From positions 5,654,178 to 5,718,177 of the forward strand of contig OZ199838.1 of the NCBI GenBank assembly GCA_964304625.1: a stretch of 64,000 nt of DNA. The letters are read 5' to 3'. Shown here in pieces: positions 3,416-57,746 of the stretch. The translations under genes were made by a program, and so were the position numbers. The notes under the pieces are model-generated. The model did no database searches. It was not told the origin of the DNA and was given only the letters and a program-made list of their open reading frames with translations. The number at the start of each line of letters is the position of its first letter. Position 1 is the stretch's first letter. This DNA comes from Kudoa neothunni (taxonomy: Eukaryota > Animalia > Cnidaria).

Positions 3416-4719
3416 TTAACACTGGTTCCTCATATTTTAATTATTGGTTTTATGTTTCCAGTATTAATAATTTTTTCAGGAATCTAGCATTTTGTCCCCA
3501 AAGATGCAATAAATATAAACAAAGTTACAAGTTATTAGTATTTGTTAACTTTTTACCCCCACATTCAATTAAACAATCACGCAATATACTTTATTTATAC
3601 AAATTGGACAATTCCAAAAGTTCTATAAGAGATTAAACCCATTAATAATTCTATTTTGATTTATTATCAGCAAATTATGGGCGATTCGTCAATACGATCT
3701 TTCAACCTTTCGAATCGCCCAAAAAAATGAAAACTACATAAATTTTAATTTTGATTATAACTTGAAATAAATGCTAAGGGTGTCTTAACATCATTAAAGG
3801 AAAACCAAACAGCTATAAAATATCCTTATTGATAGTAACAAACAAATCAGTTATTGTTGTTGTAAGTATTAATGATAAATGAGCCTAAAAAATGTTTTTA
3901 TTACAATTTATAATATTTCTTGCGAAAACAAACAGCCAAAAGACAATAAAAAAATGTTCATTCTAATATTTTGACATATATAATAATCAAATGATGTTTT
4001 CACCTATCAAATTATCGGATATTTTATGAGTGGAAACTTTGGTTGATAAGATAGAATTAAAACTAACGAACTTCATATTTTGATAGATTTAAGTTGTCCA
4101 AAACCTAAATAATCATTAATTAATTTTTATTTTCATAAGGATTAACAATATAAACTTTTAGGTCTTACGGTACCAATCATGGTGATTTCAATAACTCAAT
4201 GGGAACCCTGGGGTTGATGATTTTGACCCAGGTTTTTAATTCATAGACTAAGTTTTGTTAAGGCCAACCGTAAATCGGAGCGCTTGGATATTTCCGGGCG
4301 GGTTCTTTTTGATTGTAATAATTCGCTTATTGCGCTAAAGCCGCATTCCATTAGATATGACGAGGGAAAGGGTAATAACAACTCTCTTGCCATTGATGAG
4401 AACTTTAGATAAGTTTTGTGCACTTCATCACTGAGCCATATATATTTTCCCTTAATTTGAATAGATTCTTTATCGAATCATCATTCTTCAAATACGAAGG
4501 CTCTTCTTAATATTGAATTTTGGCGTTAGATAGTTCAGCCATCGTAGATTAAGTTAACCGGGAAGGAAAAGAGATAGTTTGTAGATCTTTGAATCTTTCG
4601 TTAAACTCGTTTATTAATGAATTTAGGTGATCAATAATTATAATCAAAGACTGAGGGGTAACGTCACATTTAACCAGTAAAAATTACTGTAATTTAAATG
4701 AGATAAATTTTTTTGTACA

Positions 4720-7734: not shown

Positions 7735-10037
7735 TTACTCAATTCCACTCTTTTTAAATGAGTTAAGCTCTTTGAAACTATTCTTCTGTATGCTTGTTAC
7801 ATTTTTTATCATAGATAGCAATGTTTTCTTAGAGGCCAAAACGTTGAGACTTGATCCGATACATGCAGCATAATTTCCCATAGTGATAGTACAATTAGAC
7901 GGGTGATAAAGATGAATGATGTGGGGGTCAGGAGCCCTAAACACTTCAAATGATGGAAGTAACACAAGTTTTTTGTAAAAATCTAAATCTTCATTGCCCC
8001 ATTGAAACCAATTTTGAACACCTCCTGCCCTAATATAATCAGTTCTGAAAATTGAGACAATTCCATAACCATAGGTTCTCCATATGCCGTTATTATAGTG
8101 TACGTATTTGGAAAAATCACTTTGAGAAATGTTGAGGAGTTTCCTATGATATCGAAACTGACTAAAAACTATAGGGAAGTATGCACGTTGACTTTCCAAG
8201 GTGTTCAAAATACAATTTCTAATGAAAAATCGATCGAAGCACATATCAACATCACATAAAATAAGATGAGAGGTTTGGGGCAGTTGTGAAATAGCCAAAT
8301 TGAATGCAAAACCCCTCGAAAAATGCACTCCTGCATATAGAAATCTGACTTTAACCAATGGATTTGCTACAAAATTCATGGACGCATAAACGTCAACACT
8401 TTTCTGATGGTCTCCAAAAATAACAAATATCAGGTTTATTGTGGCGATAGAATTTTTAATTGAGTTGACACATTTTAAAAACTGTTGAAATTCTTTCTTT
8501 CTTCCCTACAAAATTTAATTTATTAACTCAGAGACCAGAGATAAATACTTTTAGTGGAATTAGTATCGCGATATTATTTGGAATAGAAATAAGTTTCTGG
8601 CTCGATTGGACAAGATTCATCTTTTGAACGATTCCCAACCGAAAAGTAGGAGGCAAAGTAACATCACTCATATTCCAAGCATCGGTGAAATAATCAAACA
8701 AAATTATAAATCTTGAATTTAATTTCGTATTACACCTATTAACTTGAATTAATTCTCTAAATCTTATATTTTCTACCTTGTATGAGGTATTAAGGGTGAA
8801 GTTACCACAAGATAATTTTTATTAGAAAGTATTGAATTGGTTGTTTTGTAAAACAACCTTAAATGTTTATTTTTTTCAATTAATTTGTATATGAGAGAGC
8901 TTTTGGGGCGCTTTTGTTTGAGATTATTATTTATTTCATTAACTAAAAAATAGCTAAGGAAGAAATCCCGTGTTAACCAAATACTTTTTCCGACCAAAAA
9001 GTTAAAATCCTCTTTCAAGAGTGTATCCATTTCAAACTTGGCCATGAATAAATCCACAAGGTACATCTCGTCGTAATTTTTCAAGGGATGAATAGTGATA
9101 GCTTTTGCAAGAAGATGACGATACCCCCAGCTCATTTCCATCATGTTTTTGACTCCCAGTGATCTTAGATCAACAAATATATTTTTAAGCTATATTGAAA
9201 ATAAGCATTCATTTACAATTAAAAACCTACATCGTAAGAGTGAGTGCAACCAATTTTAGCATGTTTGAAGACACAACGTCCAATTTCGGTGTCTTCATGA
9301 TTAGACACCACGGTATTTAGGCAATCTTCAATGTGTGGCGCAATCAATGCCAATAATGATTTGCTGAAAAGTACTCCTGGACCTCCCATACAATAAGCTA
9401 AATTTGGCTTTAAACCAAGTTGATTTATTTCGGACATTCTTCCATAACCAGGTGATCCTAATAATCAAGCACAATTAAACTTGCGTTGATGTGACAAGTT
9501 TCTTGTCAGGTTCTCAAATCAATAGTTACCAAGATAGATTGGCTTTGAAGAGTCGATAAGTTCTACCAACAGTTGTAATCTTTTAGGGTTGACGTAGACG
9601 TCATCATCACAGCGAAAAACCCATTCGTAATTTCTCATTAAATTATCGTAGAAAAACTTAAGGATATGGAAACTCTTTCTTTGAGGGGGGTATTTTAGGT
9701 CGTCAACATCATTCAAAGTGACAAGATGATAGCGATCGGTGACGTTTGAATTATTTCCAACAAAATACCAAACATGCGATTTAATATCCTTGGCCCATGT
9801 TTGATTGATGATATGGTTTGAATTCGAAAATTTATGACCGTTGGTAATAATGGCGTAAAAAATCGAAGAACCCATTCCAGTTGGTTCTTTTGGCCGATAA
9901 ACCTTCTTCAACGTAGGCCAATGTAACTTCGATAGCAACCCATCAAAGATTCGAATCACAGTCAGTGACAAAACTAGGCCACAGAAAATACTGGTTAGCA
10001 GTTTTAAATAATGCCGAACGCACCTAATAAAAATCAT
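7735..10037 (-). CDS. CHSY1: Chondroitin sulfate synthase 1-like glycosyltransferase (5 exons, ~680 aa)
   Basis: N-terminal signal anchor; YPPQRKSF, FRCDDDVYV, YCMGGPGV, HEDTEIGRCV (beta3-GT domain); FSRG, CDVDM, YFPIVFSQF, GIWRTYGYG, WGNEDLD, IHLYH (GalNAc-T domain). GT-AG introns 9529-9458 and 9230-9190, plus two between ~8775 and ~8505, give a continuous frame. Confidence 0.9.
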
Positions 10038-13674: not shown

Positions 13675-14006
13675 TTAAGTGGTGTAGGGCTATTACGCAC
13701 TCGAACTTTGGTCCTAAAAAGGTACGTAATATCCCTTCACAGATGTAGTCGAGCAATTTTCATTGTAATACGTGTGCATATTCTGGCGAAAATTTGCCAT
13801 GCCGTTAGAATATCCATATCCCGATAGTTATAGGAATAAGTGCGATGTGTTATCTGACTTTGGTCAACGTATAATTAATTAATTTATCAGAATACTTCAA
13901 ACCGATAATTTCCGATAATACTTAATTTAGATTCGACGTAACAACCCGTTTATGATACAATTAAGATATTTTTATTTCTGTATAAACAAGAGATCGCAAT
14001 ACACAA

Positions 14007-14123
14007 TGTAACGGTGGAGTTAGTTGCGCTGTCGATAGGAGAAGCCATGATAAAATATACTCGAAAAGTAATCTACCTAGATATCACTAATCTAAATCCG
14101 GTTGACGCGTGTCATACGTTACA
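14007..14123 (-). repeat. 3' LTR (117 bp)
   Basis: Direct repeat identical to 17801-17917, with TG...CA termini and a 7-bp terminal inverted repeat. Preceded on the minus strand by the PPT. Confidence 0.97.
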
Positions 14124-17100
14124 TTCCCCCCTTGGGAAGATCGGGACATATATGATTTGATGTTGTTTCTGTGGACAGTAGTTGGGAGATTGTCAATACT
14201 AATTGTATAAGTGGAGGGTCCATGTCTTTTAAGGACTACGTAAGGTCCTGACCACTTATTGGTAGCTGGGTTTTTGTAAACAACACTAGATTGGACTTGG
14301 ATGGGTTTAGGAGGACTTGCATTGTTGTAGTTTCTTGAGTTTTTGGATGATGAATTGGTTAGGCTTTTGAGTGCAATTGCATGTGTGCGTGAAAGTTCAC
14401 GTTTGAGATTTTTTAGGTATGACAGAGTGGTAGGAGAATTGTTCATGTTATCATTGGGCAGAATGGGTGTGAGAACAAAGTTGGGTTTTTTACCGTAGAT
14501 AAGTTGAAAGGGAGAAAAACCAGTTGATTCATTGGTATGATTATTATAATGGTTCACTAACATTTGGAGATGGATGTCCCATAAATTGGGTTCGTCGAGC
14601 TTCAGTAGCATATGCTTAAGAGTTCGGTTGAAACGCTCCACGGCGCCATTGCCCTGAGGATGGTATGGTGTAGTATGGGATAGCTCGATGTTGAGATCAC
14701 GGCAGATTTGTACGATAATATTTGAAACGAAGTTCCTACCATTGTCGCTGTGTATACGTCTAGGCTTACCGAATTTGCATAATATTTCCTGGATGAGTTT
14801 GTCACAAATTGTCTCTGCTCTTAAATCAGCTAGTGGAATGGCTATGGCGAATTTGGTGAAAAGATCCACACAGCAGAGTATATATCTATTAAGATTATCG
14901 GTGCGATTGAAAGGTCCAATGATATCCCATTCCATTAATTGAAAAGGGAAGGTAGCTTTTAGTGGGATTAAGTTGGATTTTTCGGAAGACCATGGATTCA
15001 ATTGGCAAGTTTTACAAGAACGCACATAATTTCGGGTTTCGATTTCGTAGCCGGGCCAAAATGCGTTGTCTCGTAGCATCGAAAATGTTTTGAAGAACCC
15101 GGGATGGCCAGATTGATCATGAAATCTGTCCAAGATTTTAGCGCGCATTTGAAGTGGGATGAAAAGTTGATTGATTTCTCTATTTTCGGCTTTCAGAGTC
15201 CTCACCAAGAGGCCATCTTTGAATCGGTAAACTCTCTTACCTTTGTATTTATTTTGTTCAATGGATTTTGCGATGCTCGATATAGTTATGTCCTCTTTTT
15301 GGGCCGATATCCACTTGTCTACTGGTAGGGATAGGAAATGGACTGATATAGCATTTGATTCGCACGGTGTTCTCGATAAAAAGTCGGCGTCTACATTATC
15401 AGGGCCACGTTTGTAGACTATTTCTAGGTCGTAGTTCTGGAGAAATAGCAGCCAACGGGATATTCTACCGTGAGAGTCTTTGATGGTTTTCAGGTGAGTT
15501 AGGGGGTTGTGATCCGTCCATACTTTGGTTCTTTTGCCGTAGACATATTGGTGAAATGTTTTGAGTGCATGTACTAGCGCTAGTGCTTCTTTTTCGAAGG
15601 TGGAATAATTAATTTCGGATTTATTGAGGATACGGCTGGCATAACGTATGACATGTTTCTTGCCATTCACTTCCTGATAGAGTACTGATGCGATGGCTGT
15701 GTCTGAAGCGTCGGTGGAAATTGTGAAATTTTTATTCAGGTTAGGAAGACTGAGTAGTGGCGAGGATGTTAACAAATGTTTGATGTTACTTATTCGATTA
15801 ATAGCTTCGGTGGATAATTCAAAGGGTTTTGTAGAAATGGCATTGTAGAGGGGCTGTGCTATGCTAGCAAAGTTTGGAATTAGGTCGCGGTAATAGTTTG
15901 CGAAGCCAATGAATGATTGGAGGCGTTTGGGTGTATTGGGAATGGGTATGTCAGCTACTGATTTGATTCTATCAGGATCAGGTGTGATTCCATCTTTTGA
16001 GATTACGAAGCCGAGATATTTGATTGACGTTACCTTATAAATGCATTTTTTTGTGTTGGGTTTCCAGTTGAATTCTGTGAGACGCTTCATGATTAATTTG
16101 AGATGTTCATCGTGCTCGTTAGAAGAGGAGGAATAGATTAGGATATCGTCAAGGTAAACGTGACAGAATTTCCCAATGTAGTCATTCAAAGTTTCGGTCA
16201 TGGCTCTTTGGAATGCAGATGGGGCTGTTACCAAACCAAATGGCAACACATTAAATTCGTAGTGGCCAAAGGGAGTGGAGAAAGCGGTCGCATATTTACA
16301 ATTCTCGTGGAGTGGTATCTGCCAGAATCCGGATTTGAGGTCGATTTTTGAAAAGTAGGTGGCAGAAGAGAGGGTGGAGATAATGTCATGGAGTAATGGT
16401 ATGGGGAATTGTTCCGAAACTATCTGAGAGTTGAGTTTCCGATAGTCTACACAGAATCTATATTCATTGTTGCGCTTCTTGACGAGGAGCACTGGGGATG
16501 AATACGGACTGTTACTTTTACGTATTACACCATCGTTGAGCATATTATCTATCTGCTCCTTAAAAATTGGGGAGAGGGCGAAAGGGATTTTCCTGGTGGA
16601 GATGTGAAAGGGGTTATCGGCGAATTTGAAACAGTATGGAGGAACTTTTGCGTGATCCTGTTTCGGGGCGATTGAACATGTATTCCCACGTACTGCAGGG
16701 AGTGTTATGGAACCATTCTGGCAGGTGATGAGGGCAGCATGTGCAGACAAAAAATCGCGACCAAGGATGCAATCTGTTACCAGATTATGACATACAACCA
16801 TTCTCCATTTGAAGACCTTTCCATTTAGAGAGAATTCGACGATGCTAGTACCAATGGTTTCCATTTGCTTCCCGCCTGCGGATGTAAGACTAATTTTGTC
16901 AGGGTGCATTTCCACATCGAAGCCGTGTCTTATAATTGATATGGAAGATCCAGTGTCAATCAGAGCAGTTGCAACTCTAGTTCCGATTTCAATTGGTATT
17001 GTAAAATTTTTAGACAAGTCAAACTGCGCTGAAGAAACAAAACACGAATAATTGGCCTCATCCGAAACAGATTCATTAAAATTGATACAGTTAATGTTAT

Positions 17101-17842
17101 TTGTATGTTTGCTATTGCATATATATGAGAGGTGTCCCCTCTTGTGGCAGGTTTTACATATTGCAAAACCTTTGCACTCTTTGGTTGAGTGATTATTTGA
17201 GCCACATTTTTTGCAAGATCGTTTCTTGTATTTGGATTTCCTCTCGCCGTACGAGGCTGCTGCAGTGTGATTTGGAATATTTAGCTGTTCCTCAACCGAT
17301 TGGATCAGCTCAGGAAGTGCTTGGGGTTTCGAAGCAACGATAATACGTTTGATGTACTCAGGCAACGACTTCGTGCATTGGTCCATAACTAGAGTTCTAG
17401 CGGTGTCTTCGTCGATAGAGGGTAGGGCCTTGCGAAGCAAATTGTTCACTCCGAAGCAGAATTCAGCAAAGGGGGTGACATTGTCCCACGTCGAACTGTA
17501 GAACGATTGAAGGGACAATGCGGAAGAAGTGATAGGGCGATATGTATTATTTAACAGCTCCACCATAAGGTTGAATGTATCCCTCGTTGGTCGGTACATA
17601 TTTATACCGTTGGTCTCGATCAAATCGAGGATGGTATCTCCGAGGTACAAGGGAAAATTCCTAGCTTTGTCCAGGTCATTCCAGTTGCTAGCTAGTGCAA
17701 GGAGCATAAAAGAGCGGTGGAACTTGGCGAAGTTATCGGCGGCGCCGGTAAATTTCTTGAGTGGCGGTGGCTTAACAGAGTCAACACCCCTGTCACCAGA
17801 TGTAACGGTGGAGTTAGTTGCGCTGTCGATAGGAGAAGCCAT
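14087..17842 (-). CDS. Gag-Pol polyprotein, 1251 aa (Gag with two CCHC knuckles, aspartic protease, RT, RNase H, integrase)
   Basis: CKKCGSNNHSTKEC and CKTCHKRGHLSYIC; LIDTGS; RFCVDYRKLN, LPFGL, YLDDILI; TDASD, EKEALA, WTDHNPL; HDQSGH..CKTC, DIIGP, SDNG, GAVERFN, WSGPY. PR-RT-RH-IN order is Gypsy. Confidence 0.98.
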   Translation of the reverse strand: MASPIDSATNSTVTSGDRGVDSVKPPPLKKFTGAADNFAKFHRSFMLLALASNWNDLDKARNFPLYLGDTILDLIETNGINMYRPTRDTFNLMVELLNNTYRPITSSALSLQSFYSSTWDNVTPFAEFCFGVNNLLRKALPSIDEDTARTLVMDQCTKSLPEYIKRIIVASKPQALPELIQSVEEQLNIPNHTAAASYGERKSKYKKRSCKKCGSNNHSTKECKGFAICKTCHKRGHLSYICNSKHTNNINCINFNESVSDEANYSCFVSSAQFDLSKNFTIPIEIGTRVATALIDTGSSISIIRHGFDVEMHPDKISLTSAGGKQMETIGTSIVEFSLNGKVFKWRMVVCHNLVTDCILGRDFLSAHAALITCQNGSITLPAVRGNTCSIAPKQDHAKVPPYCFKFADNPFHISTRKIPFALSPIFKEQIDNMLNDGVIRKSNSPYSSPVLLVKKRNNEYRFCVDYRKLNSQIVSEQFPIPLLHDIISTLSSATYFSKIDLKSGFWQIPLHENCKYATAFSTPFGHYEFNVLPFGLVTAPSAFQRAMTETLNDYIGKFCHVYLDDILIYSSSSNEHDEHLKLIMKRLTEFNWKPNTKKCIYKVTSIKYLGFVISKDGITPDPDRIKSVADIPIPNTPKRLQSFIGFANYYRDLIPNFASIAQPLYNAISTKPFELSTEAINRISNIKHLLTSSPLLSLPNLNKNFTISTDASDTAIASVLYQEVNGKKHVIRYASRILNKSEINYSTFEKEALALVHALKTFHQYVYGKRTKVWTDHNPLTHLKTIKDSHGRISRWLLFLQNYDLEIVYKRGPDNVDADFLSRTPCESNAISVHFLSLPVDKWISAQKEDITISSIAKSIEQNKYKGKRVYRFKDGLLVRTLKAENREINQLFIPLQMRAKILDRFHDQSGHPGFFKTFSMLRDNAFWPGYEIETRNYVRSCKTCQLNPWSSEKSNLIPLKATFPFQLMEWDIIGPFNRTDNLNRYILCCVDLFTKFAIAIPLADLRAETICDKLIQEILCKFGKPRRIHSDNGRNFVSNIIVQICRDLNIELSHTTPYHPQGNGAVERFNRTLKHMLLKLDEPNLWDIHLQMLVNHYNNHTNESTGFSPFQLIYGKKPNFVLTPILPNDNMNNSPTTLSYLKNLKRELSRTHAIALKSLTNSSSKNSRNYNNASPPKPIQVQSSVVYKNPATNKWSGPYVVLKRHGPSTYTISIDNLPTTVHRNNIKSYMSRSSQGGNVTYDTRQPDLD
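14124..14133 (-). promoter_or_regulatory. Polypurine tract
   Basis: AAGGGGGGAA immediately 5' of the 3' LTR on the minus strand. Confidence 0.9.
17785..17798 (-). promoter_or_regulatory. Primer-binding site (TGGTGACAGGGGTG), possibly tRNA-Leu
   Basis: TGG (complement of tRNA CCA) starts 2 nt after the 5' LTR. The implied tRNA end CAC-CCCUGUC-A-CCA resembles Leu tRNAs (inference). Confidence 0.75.
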
Positions 17843-17917
17843 GATAAAATATACTCGAAAAGTAATCTACCTAGATATCACTAATCTAAATCCGGTTGAC
17901 GCGTGTCATACGTTACA
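17801..17917 (-). repeat. 5' LTR (117 bp), contains the gag start codon
   Basis: Identical to 14007-14123 and followed by the PBS. ATG at 17842. Confidence 0.97.
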
Positions 17918-20300
17918 CACAATTATTAGAAATTATTTTTAATATAGTTTTGTAAATATATCAAAAAAATGTGAATTTTTCCTTGTTTGTTATGCTGCTA
18001 CACAAATGTGAACTTATTCGAAAAATCCCACCGATACAATTGGTGTGGGATCCAATGGATGAGTTCAAACTCTCGCTTATAATTCACAATTGTATGCAAA
18101 CCTCTATATTGTCTGAAGTAGCTCTGGATTTTGTAAGAAGATAAAAAATTCAATTTATTGATTTATTTTCAAAATAAAAAATATCATTATAAAAGAATTT
18201 GAACATATTTTGTAGAGAATAAACACAGAATCTTAACACGAAAGTTGCCGAGGATGAAACTGAATTTTCACGGAAAATGTAGGGACAATCTCCAAATTAT
18301 ATTTTTTAACGAATGACTGCGATGAATTTAAGAAAACTTTATAATAATTTCAATTGGATAATGTTCATAATTCAACCAGTCACAACACGAAATAAAGTAG
18401 TTATCGTGATTCAGTCGTGCAATTGATGTCACGGATGTGTCGTTAATTCTGGTTAAGGAGTGTCAATGCTAATTAGCTTTTGACTAAAGAGGATAGCAAT
18501 AACGGCACCTTTAGGAGTGGCAAGAAAATCGCCCGAAATCGTTTAAAATTAAATGGGATCGGCTTTCGTAGAAATTTTGTTTTACACTAGTTTGGCTGCT
18601 CCTACATTCACGTTCTAAATTGGAGAGATGTAGCAGCATTATAGAAATATGGGTTAACTGCTGCACTTTCTCTGCGTTCGTTGCGATAGATATCCATAGC
18701 ATCACAATAGGGAGATAGCAAACAAAGAGGCCGAAGGGAATTGTCTCCGAAACATAATGACACCGCGTTGGTTACGAATAGTATTTTACCTGTGCGGTAC
18801 CGTATTTGAAATGTTCATACAAAGAAGACGTTGCTGATATTTTATAATACGGTCGTTATAATCCTAGTATTAATTAAGTAAAGTTGAGACGAATGGGTGC
18901 GGAACTAGTTAAGTAAACATGCGTGGAGGTTAAACCCACGAACATGTTATGATAAGTTAATATTCTCAGCTTACATAGGGCTAGGTCCATGGAGTAATTC
19001 CATCGTGGAAAGTAAACACACCCGCCGATCGTTAATAGGTTTGTTTCAGTGAGATCACTACGTACATCATCACCAGTGTCAGAAATAAAATTCAAAGTAT
19101 ATAGTAGAGATAGTAGATACACTTTGAATATCAGGAGGTGATAGAAAACAGTATGTTATAGTATTTTTTCGAACCACAAATTATTAATCATATACAGGAT
19201 TAGAATTTGGTTGGATATTCACATAATTGGTTTAAAAATTTAAATTTCGCGGAATAAGCTACAAACAACGCTCTATTTGGTGCTCAAGTAATCACAAATA
19301 CTCTCTCATAGACAACATTACCAAAATTGTTTGCTACCTCATATTAATTGACATTCATAGAAAATCAAGCGGTGCAGTCTCTTTTGTCCATACCCAAAAG
19401 AGTCAATAGTCAAATAGTTCTCGCTTACTTGTTCTATCAATAGAAAAAAGTAAGATAATAATCTGACTATTAAAGATTGGTCAGCGTTATTGTTATTGAA
19501 ACAATTACTGTTGAATACATTCAGAGATAAATAACTATTGAAGATATCGTTGTATTCATTCCTACTCAAGCAACAAAGGGCGAACAGATATATATTCATT
19601 GGGTGAATTGATTGACTTATTGAATAGAGATAACAATAGTCGTTATCGAGTTATTTTAATCTTGGATTACATTCAGCTATCGTAAATAGTGATTAGTTGG
19701 ACTAAGTGGTTTTATAGTTTTATAGGATCAAACGACTAAATCTTCAGGATAAATGAGTGACATAAGCCAAAGATCTCAAGTAAATTTATTAGTGCGCTTC
19801 TATTTAAAATATAAATCGGGTGTACTTTCACATTCCAACACATACACACAATTTTCGATAAAATGTAGTTGTGAAAAATTAATAAAAATCTCAATAATAT
19901 GATTACTATTGTTAATATCAATAAATATTTAATGATAGCAGTAATTATGATTAGAAATAATAAGATGCAATGCAGCTAAATCTAAAATATGATTAGAATA
20001 AAGCTGTTTAATAGTTGTTGCTGGCATTTTGTTATTAATGAACACATTACCGTTAGTGAAACCAACGAGTAATCAATGGATAGGTTTCAATAGAATGCAG
20101 CGTAATGTGTGGATAACCCTCTGTTGCCCCTGCTTATCTTGATTCCAACGCACATTTCTATAAAATCCAACACATACACACTTAACTATTGGAGATGTGG
20201 ATGGAGAGTTGAGATAATAAGGAGGTGATCGTGGAATTCTCATTATCTACCGCTCACTCGTTATCATCATATAATATCATCTATTATTGTTCGTATTATA

Positions 20301-47139: not shown

Positions 47140-47480
47140 AAAAAGCACTCTGTTGTGACGATACCTGCGCTTGCATATTGCGACTCATCAATTTGCAACA
47201 TGAAACCCCAACCACCAATTGAAGGATTCTCGATATTAAGATATATCATTTAAATTTCGTGAACATAATTTTTCCAGTTTCCAACCATTCCTTTTGAGCT
47301 CATCTTGAATTGTCTCATAATTGTGTAATAGTTCATGTATGTACCATTAACGTCTACAAAAGTCAGATAAAAAATCTGTCATGACGTAGGCTTTACCCCT
47401 TCAAAGAAGTCCCTTTTCCGAACGATATCTTTTTATTATATGCATAACAACCGAATATAAATTTATCAATATTGTTTTCT
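47140..47480 (-). pseudogene. Merlin/IS1016-like (ISXO2) transposase relic
   Basis: Minus-strand GGWGFMLQIDESQ..YRHNR resembles the Merlin GG.G.IVQIDES...KRKYNRG motif; upstream RKRDFFEG-like segment. Confidence 0.6.
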
Positions 47481-47554
47481 GTTTTTTGTAACATATCTGA
47501 CTTACGAGTTTCATATTTGCGATATTTCGTCAATAAAACAAATATTTGTAATAT

Positions 47555-48469
47555 TGTGACGGCTGCAGCTTAGGCGCTATGAGAAGCATCCGCCATTTAT
47601 ATACATGCCCCCTGACAATACCCTAGATAGTATGGTTTGATGTTATTTCCATGTGTGGTTATAATGCTATCATTGATGATTATTGAGTTAGTTAATGGAT
47701 CAAGTTGAACTGTAACGATAAATGGGCAAGACCAAGAGCCGGATTTTTTTAAGTATTTATGAATTTTGAAGAATGTGCTCAATCAGTTTATCGCGTAAAG
47801 TTTCTTCCTTTTTATGCCTAGTAATGGAATAGCGATGGCATACTTGGTAAAAAGGTCAACGCAACATAGAACATAACGGTTTTGGTTAGGTGTAATGCAC
47901 AATGGGCTAATGATATCCCATTCCATAGTTTCGGAAGGATAGGTGGATCTAACTGTAACCAAGTCAGGTTTGCTGGTAGACCAAGGATTTAGTTGACATG
48001 TTGGGAAACTACGTACATAGTTTCGAGTTTCAAGTTAATAATCGGGCCAAAATGCGTTATCGCGTAATTTGGAGAACGTTTTAAAGAAACCTTGATGGCC
48101 ACAATGATCATGGTATTCCATTAGTAACATCGAGCGTAACGTCTGTGGTATGAACAATTGACGAACTTCTCGGTCTTTTAATTTAAGGATTATAACCAAT
48201 AAACCTTCTAGAAGGCAGTAGTTACGTTTTCCTGTATAGTTACCAGATTTAAGATTTGCTGTAATATGAGATGTATGGGGATCATTTGATTGGCAGTGAT
48301 CCAAATGTCGATTGGTAATGATAGGAAATGGATATTGATAGCGTTGGCATGTTTCTCGACTCTTGAGAAAAAATCAACGTCGATATTCTCAGAAGCAGGG
48401 TTATGAAGGATTTCCAAGTCGTAATTTTGAAGGAATAGCAACTAATGGGATATTCGGCCATGGGTATCT
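47555..48469 (-). pseudogene. Truncated, decayed Gypsy element related to 14007-17917, including a 51-bp 3' LTR remnant (47555-47605)
   Basis: IKDTHGRISH*LLFLQNYDLEI, INIHFLSLPIDIWI, HDHCGHQGFFKTFSKLRDNAFWPDY and THGNNIKPY align with the intact polyprotein. PPT-like AGGGGG is followed by TGTA...TCACA. Confidence 0.9.
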
Positions 48470-48473
48470 TTAA

Positions 48474-51025
48474 CCCTCTAACGACATTGGGGTGTTCTAC
48501 ACCCCAAATCGACTTTACTCTGCCCATAGCTTCTTACATTTAGCATCAAATAATTTGAATTTCTAGCTATTCTCATAATTTTATAAGTTACATAGGTTGG
48601 GGGAAGCTCAGAAAAAAAATGTGAAACTAAGCTTAAAAGAAAAAACTTACCTCTAACGACATTGGGGTGTATTTCACCCCAGATTTTTGTTGGATAAATT
48701 TAGTTGAAATATTATTATAAAACGTTTGACGAAATCTTAGTATATTCTAATGAGAGATTTTGGAAGAAAATCTCAACAATATCATAGATTAATCCTAATA
48801 ATCTTATTCGAACGCCATTATCATTGCATCGGATATTTTCGTTATTTACATGGTGTGTGATTTCTCTTGTTCTCACATAAATTGATACATGTTTAATAAA
48901 TGTTATTTGATTTATTGATATATTTTAAATACTAAATCTTTTATAAAATTTTACGAAATTATCTAAAACATGGGGACGATGTATTCTCACAGGTTATAGG
49001 GCGAACATTTAACTCTTAGAATATCATATTTTATTAGATTTGAACAATAGTCGTTAAAATTCTTAAGTATTTTAATTAGTAAATAAAAAGGCGACAGATA
49101 ACCTAACAAATAGCATCATTAAACACACGTGGTTGGCTTGTTTTAAAACGTAAATATGAGCAGTGATTTGTCCGAATTTATTGAGGAGCTCGAATCATAT
49201 GGTAGTAAAGTCAAAGACTGATTATCTGAGTTTTTAGAATCATCCGACGAATGCTATGAAATCGAATGTAACCAAGACTCCGCTGAGGGAAAAAGTGGGA
49301 TTGTTTGGAGCCTGATTAAGCCATCTGTTTCAAAAACATCAATTGAAAACATAATGAATTGTAATCCAGGACCAACAATTTACTGTATTCAACGCATAAA
49401 AGAAGTTTTGGATTGTTTTTTGATATTCTTTAATGAAGATATTTGTGGAGAAATTATTAAAAACACCAATATGTTTGGACGTGATTATTTCCACAATTCC
49501 TGGAAAGAAATTGATGATGTTGAATTTAAAGGGTTCCTGGGAATCCTTATCTTAATGGGAATTCATCAAGAGAGAGCGGAACCTTTGCATGAACTTTTTA
49601 GTTTATCTGAAGGGAAGCCAATTTATCGTCAGCTTTTTTCTCGAACTCGCTTTTTACAAATATCGCGAGCACTACACTTTGGCAATAAAGGCACAAGAAT
49701 GCAAAGAAGTGTTGATAAATTTGCTGCAATTCGTGATGTTTGGAACATGTGGGTGAACGAATTACCCAAGTACTTTGCACCTCATGAAGACGTCACAATT
49801 GACGAACAACTTTTCCCTTTTAAAGGAAGATGCCCCTTTAGGCAATATATGCCTAAAAACCGGCGAAATATGGTATTAAATTTTTTCTCATGGCTGATCC
49901 CGTTGAAAAATATGTCCTCAATATTCCTCCTTATCTCGGGAAAATGGCGAAAACGCTACTAGAAGTGTTGGAGTTGGCGAAAGCGTTGTTCTTTCACTTG
50001 CATCTCCATTGTACAATTCTGGGAGGAACATTGTTGCGGATAATTTTTTTTCGTCGCTATCACTGGCATCAAAGTTGCTGCAAAAACGCCTTACTTATCT
50101 TGGAACTATAAGGAATAATAAGAGGGATTTGCATCCATGTGTGCTTCCATCAAGGAACAGGGCGTTGCATAGTACCTTATTTCTCTTCCATGAGAAAAAC
50201 ATGATAACGTCATATGTTCCCAAGAAAGGAAAGGCCGTTAATTTTCTATCGACAGGAACAAATAACACCAACGTAGGAAATCTACAAAATGACAGAAAAC
50301 CACACGTTATAGAGCACTACAATAGCACTAAAGGTGGGGTCGATACTGTCGACAGGATGATATCTTCAGTATCCGTTCGTAGGTTCTGCAGAAGATGGCC
50401 AGTCGTCGTATTTTATATGATTGACATATCATTAATCAACGCCTTCTGCATCTATAAAAACATTTTTAAGGAAAATCCCCCAAAAAGAAGAGTTTTTTTA
50501 AAAGAAATGGCAGAATTATTGTACAGGCCACTTCTTAGTAGAAGTACTAAAATTGAAAAAGTAGTCAAAAGGACTCTTACATCCAATAAAAATAAACATA
50601 ATGTTCCTTCAAATTCGAAATCGCAATCTAGATGCCAATTATGTCCCCGAAAAAACGATAAAAAACGACCTTATGCTGCGAAATCTGTCAACGATATTAT
50701 TGCAAAGATCACTCATCAAAAATCTGTTCTGATTGCTCAAAATAAACAATTAATTTGATTATATATTATTTTTTATTTATTCGTCTACTTATGCTTACAA
50801 AAAATACGTATTTCATTCGCAGGACGCATTTATACAAGTTTTTGAACAATGCGCGAAATCTTCCGATAGGATTAAAATGGGCTTAATGATGTCAATATTC
50901 TGTATTTTCCTTGAAATCTGTTCGTATGAATTTTTTATAACTTTGCGTATTACTTTATATTAATTTTACAAATAAAGTAATCAAAAAAAATCTGGGGTTA
51001 AATCTACCCCAATGTCATTAGAGGG
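48474..51025 (+). mobile_element. Full-length piggyBac transposon (2,552 bp)
   Basis: TTAA at both ends; 20-bp TIR CCCTCTAACGACATTGGGGT / ACCCCAATGTCATTAGAGGG (1 mismatch); internal TIR repeat at ~48650. Confidence 0.95.
49156..50758 (+). pseudogene. piggyBac transposase (PGBD4-like), disrupted
   Basis: Acidic N-terminus from ATG 49156 with an in-frame TGA at codon 22; VTIDEQLFPFKGRCPFRQYMP, KPAKYGIKF, ADNFFSS, YNSTKGGVDTVD and a C-terminal Cys-rich domain. Frameshifts near 49860, 49960 and 50670. Confidence 0.92.
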
Positions 51026-55887: not shown

Positions 55888-57746
55888 TAGGGTTTGCAAT
55901 TTTCGACGTTTATTTTAAGAATAAAAAAGACAATTTTTATCGGAGACTAAAAAACAAAGTTTTATAGAATACAAATAATTATTTTGAGTAACTACTAGTT
56001 AAAATAGAGATGGACCGTTAAAATGAAGCATCGAAACCATTGAAGCGCGTTTATTTGAGAGTTTCATTCGTTTTTTTCGAATTATATAATTTAATTTCGA
56101 AAAGCTTCGTTCTACAGCGATAGATGAAATGGGTAATGCCAACAAATTCAACGTAAGTTCTGACAGCAATGGGCAAATATTGGATCTTTCCTTCCAAAAG
56201 TCTGTAGTGATAGAAGGATGATTTGGATCCATAATTGCCTTATAAAGGAAATTATATTCATCTTTAAGGATAACTTTGTCTTTAGCACCTATTGAATAAC
56301 AAAGATCATCAATATGTATATTTTCAATCGATAATGGCGTTGCTGGATCAATGCTTTTGATTGTTTTAAAGAAAGTGGCTGATGGAAAACAATCATTAAT
56401 ACTATTTGATATAAAATCATGGATTTTCTCGATGATGCTCCCGCGAAAAGATTCAATTTTATTGATAAGATTTGTTCTAATTTCAAATGGAAGAAGTCCA
56501 AGATTATCTTTGTGATCATTCAGAAAATTTTTCTTCATTTCAAAATCATTAAATCCAGTCGAACATATTTGAAAAACAAAAATTATCGTTAGTTTCAATA
56601 CGTTTCGAAATTTCAACCAACGGCGTAAGTTCATCAATTAACATAGTGACAGAGTGAAATAAGACATTGATATTCTCAGAATTAATTAGTAGAATTTCAT
56701 TTAGAAAATCGACAACAGCTAGATAATATTCTTTTATTTGCTTTAAGCAATTGTAAAAACTATACCAACGGACATCCATGACACGAGGAATTTCTTTGAC
56801 GTTTTCCAAATCGTTGTTCTTGAGATGAACCAGAAATGTTCTCTTTGCATTTCTATTCTTGGGCAGAATAGTTGAAAACTTCAGGCAGAATTTTTTAATA
56901 TCTAAGAAAAATTCGTCAGTAGCTTTTCGGACAGCAAGGTGGATAATATGAGAAAAGCATGGAATTCGAATAATATGTGGATACATTGCTTTCAAATCAT
57001 TGATGAATTTTTTCATGTATGACGCTGAATCCGAAATAATAGCGCAACAGTTATCCCATACCAAGTCGTGACGTTTCAGCACGTTTGATAATTGATTAGC
57101 AACAATAACAGAATTGCAACTTAAAATTCTGGATGAATCTAACATAAATATCATTCTTTTATTTGAATGGTGATCGTAATAACAAGCCAACGTGTTGAAA
57201 ACAGATCTATCATCAAAGTCAGGCGATTCGTCAATTATCAAACGGAAGCGAACATCTACCATTGCTAGTTTAATTGCGTCTATACTCCTCAAAAATCTCG
57301 GGGAAATATGTTTATCGATAAGAACTCTTCCATCGGGCAATGATTGTGAATCTGGACAATAATTAAAAAGAAAATTCCTCAATGAACTATCTTTATTGAT
57401 AGCTTGGAATGAAAGACCATCAAATAATACAATCTTTACTAGGTCCATTTCAATTTCGCTTGTGTTGGATCTATCACGATGCAAAATATCTTTGATGGGG
57501 ATAGCGTTTTTCACATTAGTCTTCATAGTTGCGTGTTTTTGAGATCCAACATGTTCTTGATTTCTGTTTTGTTTAAGGGGTATAATTAGCCTGCAATATT
57601 TGCATGACAACGAGTCTCCCGCAACTTCCAAGTCGCTCTATTCAATTAAACAAAATCGGCTTTTTTCGATCGAAAAAAAAAATAAAAACTAGCACGTTTT
57701 TTCAAAATCGACGGAAATTGATTTTAATCGAAACTTACAAACCCTA
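55888..57746 (-). mobile_element. hAT transposon with a CGGBP1-like transposase (one frameshift)
   Basis: TIR TAGGGTTTGCAATTTTCGA / TCGAAACTTACAAACCCTA; 8-bp TSD ATTATAAG / ATTATAAT. ORFs 56549-57631 (CKYC..H..KH zinc finger, IIDESPD, ISDSASYM, CFSHIIH, VRWYS) and 55999-56637 (LPISSIAVERSFS). Confidence 0.92.

Follow-up and report, generated by a model that had tools for sequence, protein, structure and literature searches.

In a 64,000-nt stretch of the genome of the cnidarian Kudoa neothunni (GenBank assembly GCA_964304625.1, contig OZ199838.1, positions 5,654,178 to 5,718,177; hereafter the window), we analysed a 3,911-bp long terminal repeat (LTR) retrotransposon of the Ty3/gypsy group. 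This is probably an autonomous and recently active Gypsy element that has shrunk to near its coding minimum, with a start at an AUG inside the 5' LTR, a C-terminal tail that runs on into the 3' LTR, and a compaction linked to its host. A single open reading frame (ORF) of 3,756 nt, stop codon included, takes up 96.0% of the element. All coordinates are positions in the window, and the element is read on the minus strand; its features, in the direction of reading, are as follows.

14007-17917, minus strand: Ty3/gypsy element, 3,911 bp
17918-17922, no strand: target-site duplication, 5' side of the element, copy of 14002-14006
17801-17917, minus strand: 5' LTR, 117 bp, whose last 42 nt encode Gag residues 1-14
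17843-17880, minus strand: never-translated LTR stretch, 38 nt (LTR positions 38-75), with an A/T-rich block directly 5' of the ATG, a candidate for the poly(A) signal and the translation context
14087-17842, minus strand: single Gag-protease-reverse transcriptase-RNase H-integrase ORF, 1251 amino acids, from the ORF listing, Pfam and motifs
17785-17798, minus strand: primer-binding site (PBS), 14 nt, for the 3' end plus CCA of tRNA-Leu(AAG); 2 nt past the LTR, codons 15-19
17117-17215, minus strand: two CCHC zinc knuckles at the end of Gag, residues 210-242
16733-16999, minus strand: aspartic protease, residues 282-370, DTG at 16946-16957; Pfam matches below the curated cut-off, motif present
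16001-16483, minus strand: reverse transcriptase, residues 454-614 by Pfam, YLDD at 16145-16156
15431-15808, minus strand: RNase H (PF17917, PF17919), residues 679-804
14540-15160, minus strand: integrase, HHCC zinc domain and DDE core, residues 895-1101 by Pfam, with motifs
14240-14248, minus strand: integrase GPY motif, by motif search
14124-14133, minus strand: polypurine tract (PPT), adjoining the 3' LTR and within the ORF
14007-14123, minus strand: 3' LTR, 117 bp, whose first 37 sense nt (14123-14087) hold the integrase C-terminal tail and stop
14002-14006, no strand: target-site duplication (CACAA on the plus strand), 3' side of the element, the same 5 bases as at 17918-17922

The two LTRs are 100% identical, with TG..CA termini and 7-bp inverted ends. 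Their true length is 117 bp; the repeat finder gives 118 nt because one flanking base also matches. The ATG (17842-17840) occupies LTR positions 76-78, 42 nt ahead of the LTR end, and the TAG stop codon (14089-14087) occupies positions 35-37 of the other LTR. Both the PBS and the PPT lie within the ORF, the element has no non-coding leader or trailer, and LTR positions 38-75 are the sole part of the LTR that is non-coding in both copies. An earlier reading of this DNA, made from the letters alone (the sequence-only reading), had given the element size, the LTR length, the ORF extent and the ATG and stop positions, and every number was correct on recheck. Its PBS, PPT, two translated LTR overlaps, 38 non-coding nucleotides and missing leader and trailer likewise agree with our coordinates.

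Pfam matches follow the Ty3/gypsy order of protease, reverse transcriptase, RNase H, integrase zinc domain and integrase core, and the catalytic motifs DTG, YLDD, DAS, HHCC, D-D-E and GPY were all found in the ORF. No Pfam match to a capsid domain was obtained in the ORF, and Gag was recognised through its CCHC knuckles upstream of the protease. Pfam also gave no match to a chromodomain, and the protein continues for only about 20 residues past the GPY/F region, which speaks against a place among the chromoviruses or in the CRM clade. A third ORF encoding env, an errantivirus trait, is absent; there is no room for one, as pol ends inside the LTR. A Ty1/copia (Pseudoviridae) identity was ruled out by the position of the integrase, which is C-terminal and not upstream of the reverse transcriptase. 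Taken together with the direct LTRs, their TG..CA and inverted ends, the target-site duplication, the PBS and the PPT, all features of LTR retrotransposons, these results support the assignment to an autonomous-looking, intact Ty3/gypsy element (Metaviridae, non-chromoviral, no env).

The 14-nt PBS is the complement of the 3' end plus CCA of a tRNA-Leu(AAG) gene. No other site in the genome was matched by a tRNA-shaped search pattern. A search of the genome with a 12-nt PBS pattern matched element copies only, and the tRNA emerged with the tRNA-shaped pattern. We scored 38 tRNA genes in the genome, with most anticodons represented by a single copy; the primer tRNA of the element family, tRNA-Leu(AAG), likewise turned up once.

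The genome (40.26 Mb in three large contigs and one 18-kb contig) carries about seven near-identical copies of this family and three solo LTRs, which we describe copy by copy, without a consensus. A second copy, at a different locus, is 100% identical over all 3,911 bp, and this identity points to recent mobility. The other near-identical copies differ by 4-7 changes: one carries 4 substitutions, and two carry 6 substitutions and one frame-breaking indel each. A further copy is split by a nested 4.2-kb Gypsy element and another has an internal deletion; the frame is uninterrupted in three copies. The element and nine other insertions each have their own perfect 5-bp duplication, different in all ten, which contradicts an origin of the copies by segmental duplication. 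This is therefore a low-copy family that has transposed very recently. Because protease, reverse transcriptase, RNase H and integrase are all present in order and nine further insertions carry perfect duplications, the anatomy of the element is confirmed as more than a chance arrangement.

An independent DNA sequencing run yielded contigs with a depth of about 8.5 in the flanks, about 39 in the internal part and about 100 in the LTR. At 14475 (element position 3443) the DNA-run contig has G where the window has A. The G is also carried by copies L003-L005, and the A thus marks the window copy and its identical twin as the youngest subgroup; these two also share T at LTR position 8 in both LTRs. 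It is hardly credible that the element is dead or an artefact of the assembly. Nothing was found in favour of that idea, and it is opposed by independent DNA-run contigs that span the element and its junctions, by the several loci with distinct duplications, and by an intact ORF with all catalytic motifs. The nested element mentioned above (G000:C2:2175099-2179290, between L006 and L012) is a different compact Gypsy of about 4.2 kb, inserted with its own short duplication at element position 3704 of the host copy.

Compactness is shared by other families of this genome. Eight Gypsy families cut out of it measure 3,854-4,343 bp, with LTRs of 86-135 bp, and one of them, L071 (3,919 bp, 98-bp LTR), has both overlaps, like the window copy. 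The sequence-only reading had proposed a retrotransposon lineage streamlined alongside a reduced host genome and had pointed to a reverse transcriptase phylogeny as a check. In the pol tree that we ran, the families of this genome are spread, among elements of other animals, over three or more well-supported positions that are separate from one another. Constraining the compact families to one clade costs 202 log-likelihood units and is rejected (p-AU 7e-71) by the approximately unbiased (AU) test, run on 36 rows of a 111-row set whose tree rows are unnamed or loosely named matches. The compact families are thus not one streamlined lineage, but their separate ancestries fit a compaction that recurs across Gypsy lineages in this host and is linked to it.

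Compactness could instead have been inherited from one old Gypsy clade that is small everywhere, with no part played by host genome reduction. The nearest outside relative, the P0002 element, is also compact (4.02 kb, 158-bp LTRs, stop in the 3' LTR), and even ordinary sisters measure 5.2 kb and have LTRs below 200 bp. Against such an inheritance stand the scattered, well-supported tree positions and the cost of joining them, and in the sister of L070/L071 gag is separate, while the leader and trailer measure 200 and 40 nt. We regard it as improbable, and favour compaction linked to the host. Elsewhere in the genome, G000:C2:5538000-5560000 (L010, L011, L019) holds a cluster of decayed, related compact Gypsy elements, adjacent or nested, perhaps a graveyard of retrotransposons or a region where they prefer to land.

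We approached the start codon by a comparison between families of this genome. Five of them carry an in-frame ATG within the 5' LTR: the window copy, L011, L068, L070 and L071. L011 (61% amino acid identity) and L068 (53%) share the PBS of the window copy, with the frame open through it, and the distance from the ATG to the LTR end is 42 nt in the window copy, 36 nt in L011 and 27 nt in L068, all multiples of 3. L070 and L071 belong to a different lineage with a different PBS, and their ATG lies 25 nt inside the LTR. Judged from these comparisons and the pol tree, the start codon has moved into the LTR at least twice.

Downstream of this ATG (M1), there is no further ATG before the next in-frame methionine, M45, where relatives have Q, K or E. 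Upstream of M45 stands a Gag motif that all the compared families conserve. Indels in the LTR codons between families come in multiples of three. Furthermore, over the 14 LTR-encoded codons the window copy and the diverged solo LTR L021 differ at 2, 2 and 7 sites of codon positions 1, 2 and 3 (synonymous to non-synonymous, 6:3), and the window copy and the LTR of its 83% identical relative L007 at 3, 0 and 6 sites (5:3). L007 is decayed and has no 5' LTR, and only its 3' LTR was used. Because the LTR ATG is kept in five families, M45 is unconserved, the conserved motif lies upstream of M45 and the LTR codons change with a synonymous bias, the LTR ATG is the best-supported start codon, and the N-terminal overlap is best read as genuine coding sequence. 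The preference of the sequence-only reading for this ATG over an internal methionine is upheld on these grounds. A decayed Gypsy relic in the window (47400-48500; matches at about 47822-48471) is about 70% identical to the element family in reverse transcriptase and RNase H. Its LTR end (47555-47615) keeps an ATG 42 nt from the end, with a TATA-like block before it and a frame that now has a stop.

Several points weigh against the interpretation as a whole. The codon-position tests are small, with P of about 0.04 each in two comparisons that share ancestry and are not independent. The AU-test group was named after the tree had been seen, and several rows have biased composition. Three RNA runs with the species label gave 0 reads on 13700-18200 and no indexed RNA run contains the element, which is not evidence of silence. 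The canonical AATAAA is absent from the LTR. Finally, the A/T-rich block before the ATG is also TATA-like, which would put the transcription start downstream of the ATG.

The last point can be turned into an alternative in which the block (LTR positions about 64-73) is a TATA box, possibly also the poly(A) signal. Transcription would then start at about LTR position 95, the LTR ATG would be absent from the genomic RNA, and Gag would start at M45. The block resembles a TATA box in the window copy and in other families, and for some LTRs a motif that serves as both TATA box and poly(A) signal has been proposed (PMC3601003). However, M45 is not a methionine in any relative, the conserved Gag motif would be lost, and neither the synonymous-biased change of the LTR codons nor their indels in multiples of three are in its favour. 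In L070 and L071, moreover, the block lies about 35 nt from the LTR end; read as a TATA box, with transcription beginning 25-30 nt further on, it would put that beginning so close to the LTR end, or beyond it, that the repeat region (R) would measure at most 5 nt or vanish. We judge this alternative quite unlikely, and retain initiation at the LTR ATG, which needs a transcription start upstream of LTR position 76.

At the opposite end, the LTR-encoded tail consists of 11 residues after the PPT codons and comes only about 20 residues after the last conserved integrase motif. The 37 nucleotides of the 3' LTR that the sequence-only reading had counted as translated are exact, but no coding constraint is seen in the peptide that they encode. 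Substitutions in the tail show no codon-position bias, in contrast to the N-terminal LTR codons, where changes are mostly synonymous. The stop is constant at LTR positions 35-37 in three subfamilies of the family group of the window copy; across families it ranges between 26 nt ahead of the LTR and 42 nt within it. Because coding constraint is missing and the stop position varies between families, the tail looks like a neutral, functionless run-on. Deletion would have removed the spacer that separated integrase from PPT, so that translation ends at the first in-frame stop in the unique 3' region (U3).

Both overlaps might be passive in this sense: the 5' start would simply be the first AUG on a very short leader, the tail would exist for want of an earlier stop, the peptides would be functionless, and the arrangement would be unselected. 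The N-terminal peptides do vary in length and sequence between families, the relatives L072, L073 and L075 start just past the PBS, and the missing codon-position bias and shifting stop of the tail point the same way. Set against this are the synonymous bias in the 14 N-terminal codons, the independent origin of an LTR start codon in two lineages, and the stop kept at LTR positions 35-37 in three subfamilies. For the two ends together we find a passive origin unlikely, although less so than the alternatives above; for the 3' end it is compatible with the interpretation that we prefer.

That interpretation, a coding start inside the 5' LTR and a run-on at the 3' end, suggests the following layout. 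Translation of one fused gag-pol ORF would begin at an AUG within the R-U5 part of the 5' LTR (U5, unique 5' region), cross the remaining 42 nt of that LTR and the tRNA-Leu(AAG) PBS and, at the far end, pass through the PPT into U3. Transcription would begin ahead of LTR position 76. In the 3' LTR, the A/T-rich block that precedes the AUG would serve as poly(A) signal, and cleavage would fall within the final 20-30 nt. Each of the five families that start in the LTR has such a block directly before the ATG, and its distance of 25-50 nt to the LTR end is workable for a poly(A) signal. The LTR would then comprise a short U3, an R with the 5' untranslated region, the poly(A) signal and the first codons, and a U5 of about 10-25 nt of gag codons. 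Given this transcription start and poly(A) position, it would follow that U5, the att ends, the PBS and the PPT are overprinted on codons. That the signals are either squeezed into 38 nt or overprinted, as the sequence-only reading had it, we infer from the sequence, the U3, R and U5 boundaries included.

Much of the promoter and packaging information would lie within the 117-bp LTR or inside gag, and promoter elements may lie downstream of the transcription start, as in Ty1. In animal Metaviridae LTRs the poly(A) signal is reported to be better conserved than the TATA box, and their short inverted repeat (SIR) consensus resembles the ends of the LTR of this element (PMC3601003). A G-rich tract like the PPT of the element also precedes the 3' LTR in related families. 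An initiator-like motif (TTAGT/TAGTT) occurs in 6 of 9 LTRs, but 26% of shuffles match that level with some 5-mer, and it was discarded as not significant. RNA structure prediction for the 5' region gave no signal (z-score -0.92), and an Rfam search of the whole window returned no match.

Known elements show parts of this arrangement. Ty1 of Saccharomyces cerevisiae (Pseudoviridae) has its GAG AUG in the U5 part of the LTR. Unlike the Kudoa element, Ty1 is copia-type and measures 5.9 kb, with 334-bp LTRs and gag/pol frameshifting, and its ORF stops short of the 3' LTR. Its transcription starts inside the 5' LTR, as we propose here, and its regulatory factor sites extend downstream of the transcription start, inside GAG (10.1101/176248). 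At the other end, the gag-pol ORF of CRM-clade chromoviruses of plants (Beetle, group A CRM) runs through the PPT and ends in the 3' LTR (PMC3059260, PMC3605345), a precedent that leaves the background given by the sequence-only reading incomplete. CRM elements differ in being large, with long LTRs, and in that their LTR-encoded part is a functional targeting (CR) motif, whereas the Kudoa element has 11 unconstrained tail residues, no chromodomain and a 5' overlap as well. Among smaller Gypsy elements, Tf1 of fission yeast (4.9 kb) has a single fused gag-pol ORF and Mag of Bombyx has very short LTRs (about 77 bp). Each is at least 1 kb longer than the element described here, and we know of no double ORF-LTR overlap in either.

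Closer relatives come from other organisms. The sister elements P0049 (L081) and P0010 (L082) fall in the same region of the pol clade and have LTRs of 174-198 bp, so that the background given by the sequence-only reading, with its longer Gypsy LTRs, is incomplete here too: close relatives elsewhere already have LTRs below 200 bp. Unlike the Kudoa element, they measure about 5.2 kb, have separate gag and pol ORFs totalling about 1,500 amino acids, with 68-200 nt of non-coding leader and 36-40 nt of trailer, and show no ORF-LTR overlap. The closest outside relative is the P0002 element (L074 and L075, from two metagenome assemblies), with 39% identity over 88% of the protein. It resembles the Kudoa element in its size of about 4.02 kb, its tRNA-Leu PBS, its single ORF and a termination 40-42 nt into the 3' LTR; it differs in having its ATG 20 nt past the 5' LTR, just beyond the PBS, and an LTR of 158 bp. 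The P0064 and P0107 contigs were incomplete and added no information. A literature search, with Repbase, Dfam and GyDB outside its scope and hence weak as evidence of novelty, returned no account of both overlaps together or of autonomous elements below 4 kb. Each overlap is known singly, in Ty1 and in CRM, as are short LTRs and fused gag-pol ORFs, and the element is an extreme form of a known design.

Other features of the window and of the genome are given here, one per line.

Window 7735-10037, minus strand: exons of a chondroitin N-acetylgalactosaminyltransferase/Fringe-like glycosyltransferase (PF05679, PF02434), a CHGN-type, metazoan-type host gene 4 kb from the element, in keeping with the metazoan origin of the DNA
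Host HSC70: no more than 78% identical to any named protein, its matches being a mixture of arthropods, rotifers and flatworms, as in a fast-evolving metazoan
Window 49354-50758, plus strand: two adjacent ORFs that match the two halves of PF13843, a piggyBac-like transposase, split or intron-bearing
Window 55999-57631, minus strand: hAT-type transposase remnant or gene in overlapping ORFs, with a hAT dimerisation domain and a weak DUF659 match
Fourth contig, G000:C4 (18,219 bp; L079 is its first 10 kb): looks mitochondrial, with very divergent proteins and a G+C content of 43%, compared to about 30% in the nuclear window

The element marks how far Gypsy elements can shrink and is not a new kind of element. 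If a transcript map confirms the proposed layout, it would be among the smallest autonomous LTR retrotransposons that we know of and a natural minimal system for the cis signals that such elements need (promoter, R, poly(A), packaging and att), showing how these share sequence with codons. A further proposition, for which we put the chances a little short of even, is that separate lineages arrived independently at autonomous elements close to the minimum, 3.85-3.92 kb long and 96% coding with LTRs of 86-117 bp, in which R, poly(A) signal, U5, att ends, PBS and PPT are laid over gag-pol codons. If so, this convergence would show how small LTR retroelements can in practice become, and promoter and packaging functions would fit into about 100 nt or sit inside gag. 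The recurrence of compaction in separate lineages of one 40-Mb genome would tie element size to host genome-size pressure, a link that has often been proposed and rarely documented element by element.

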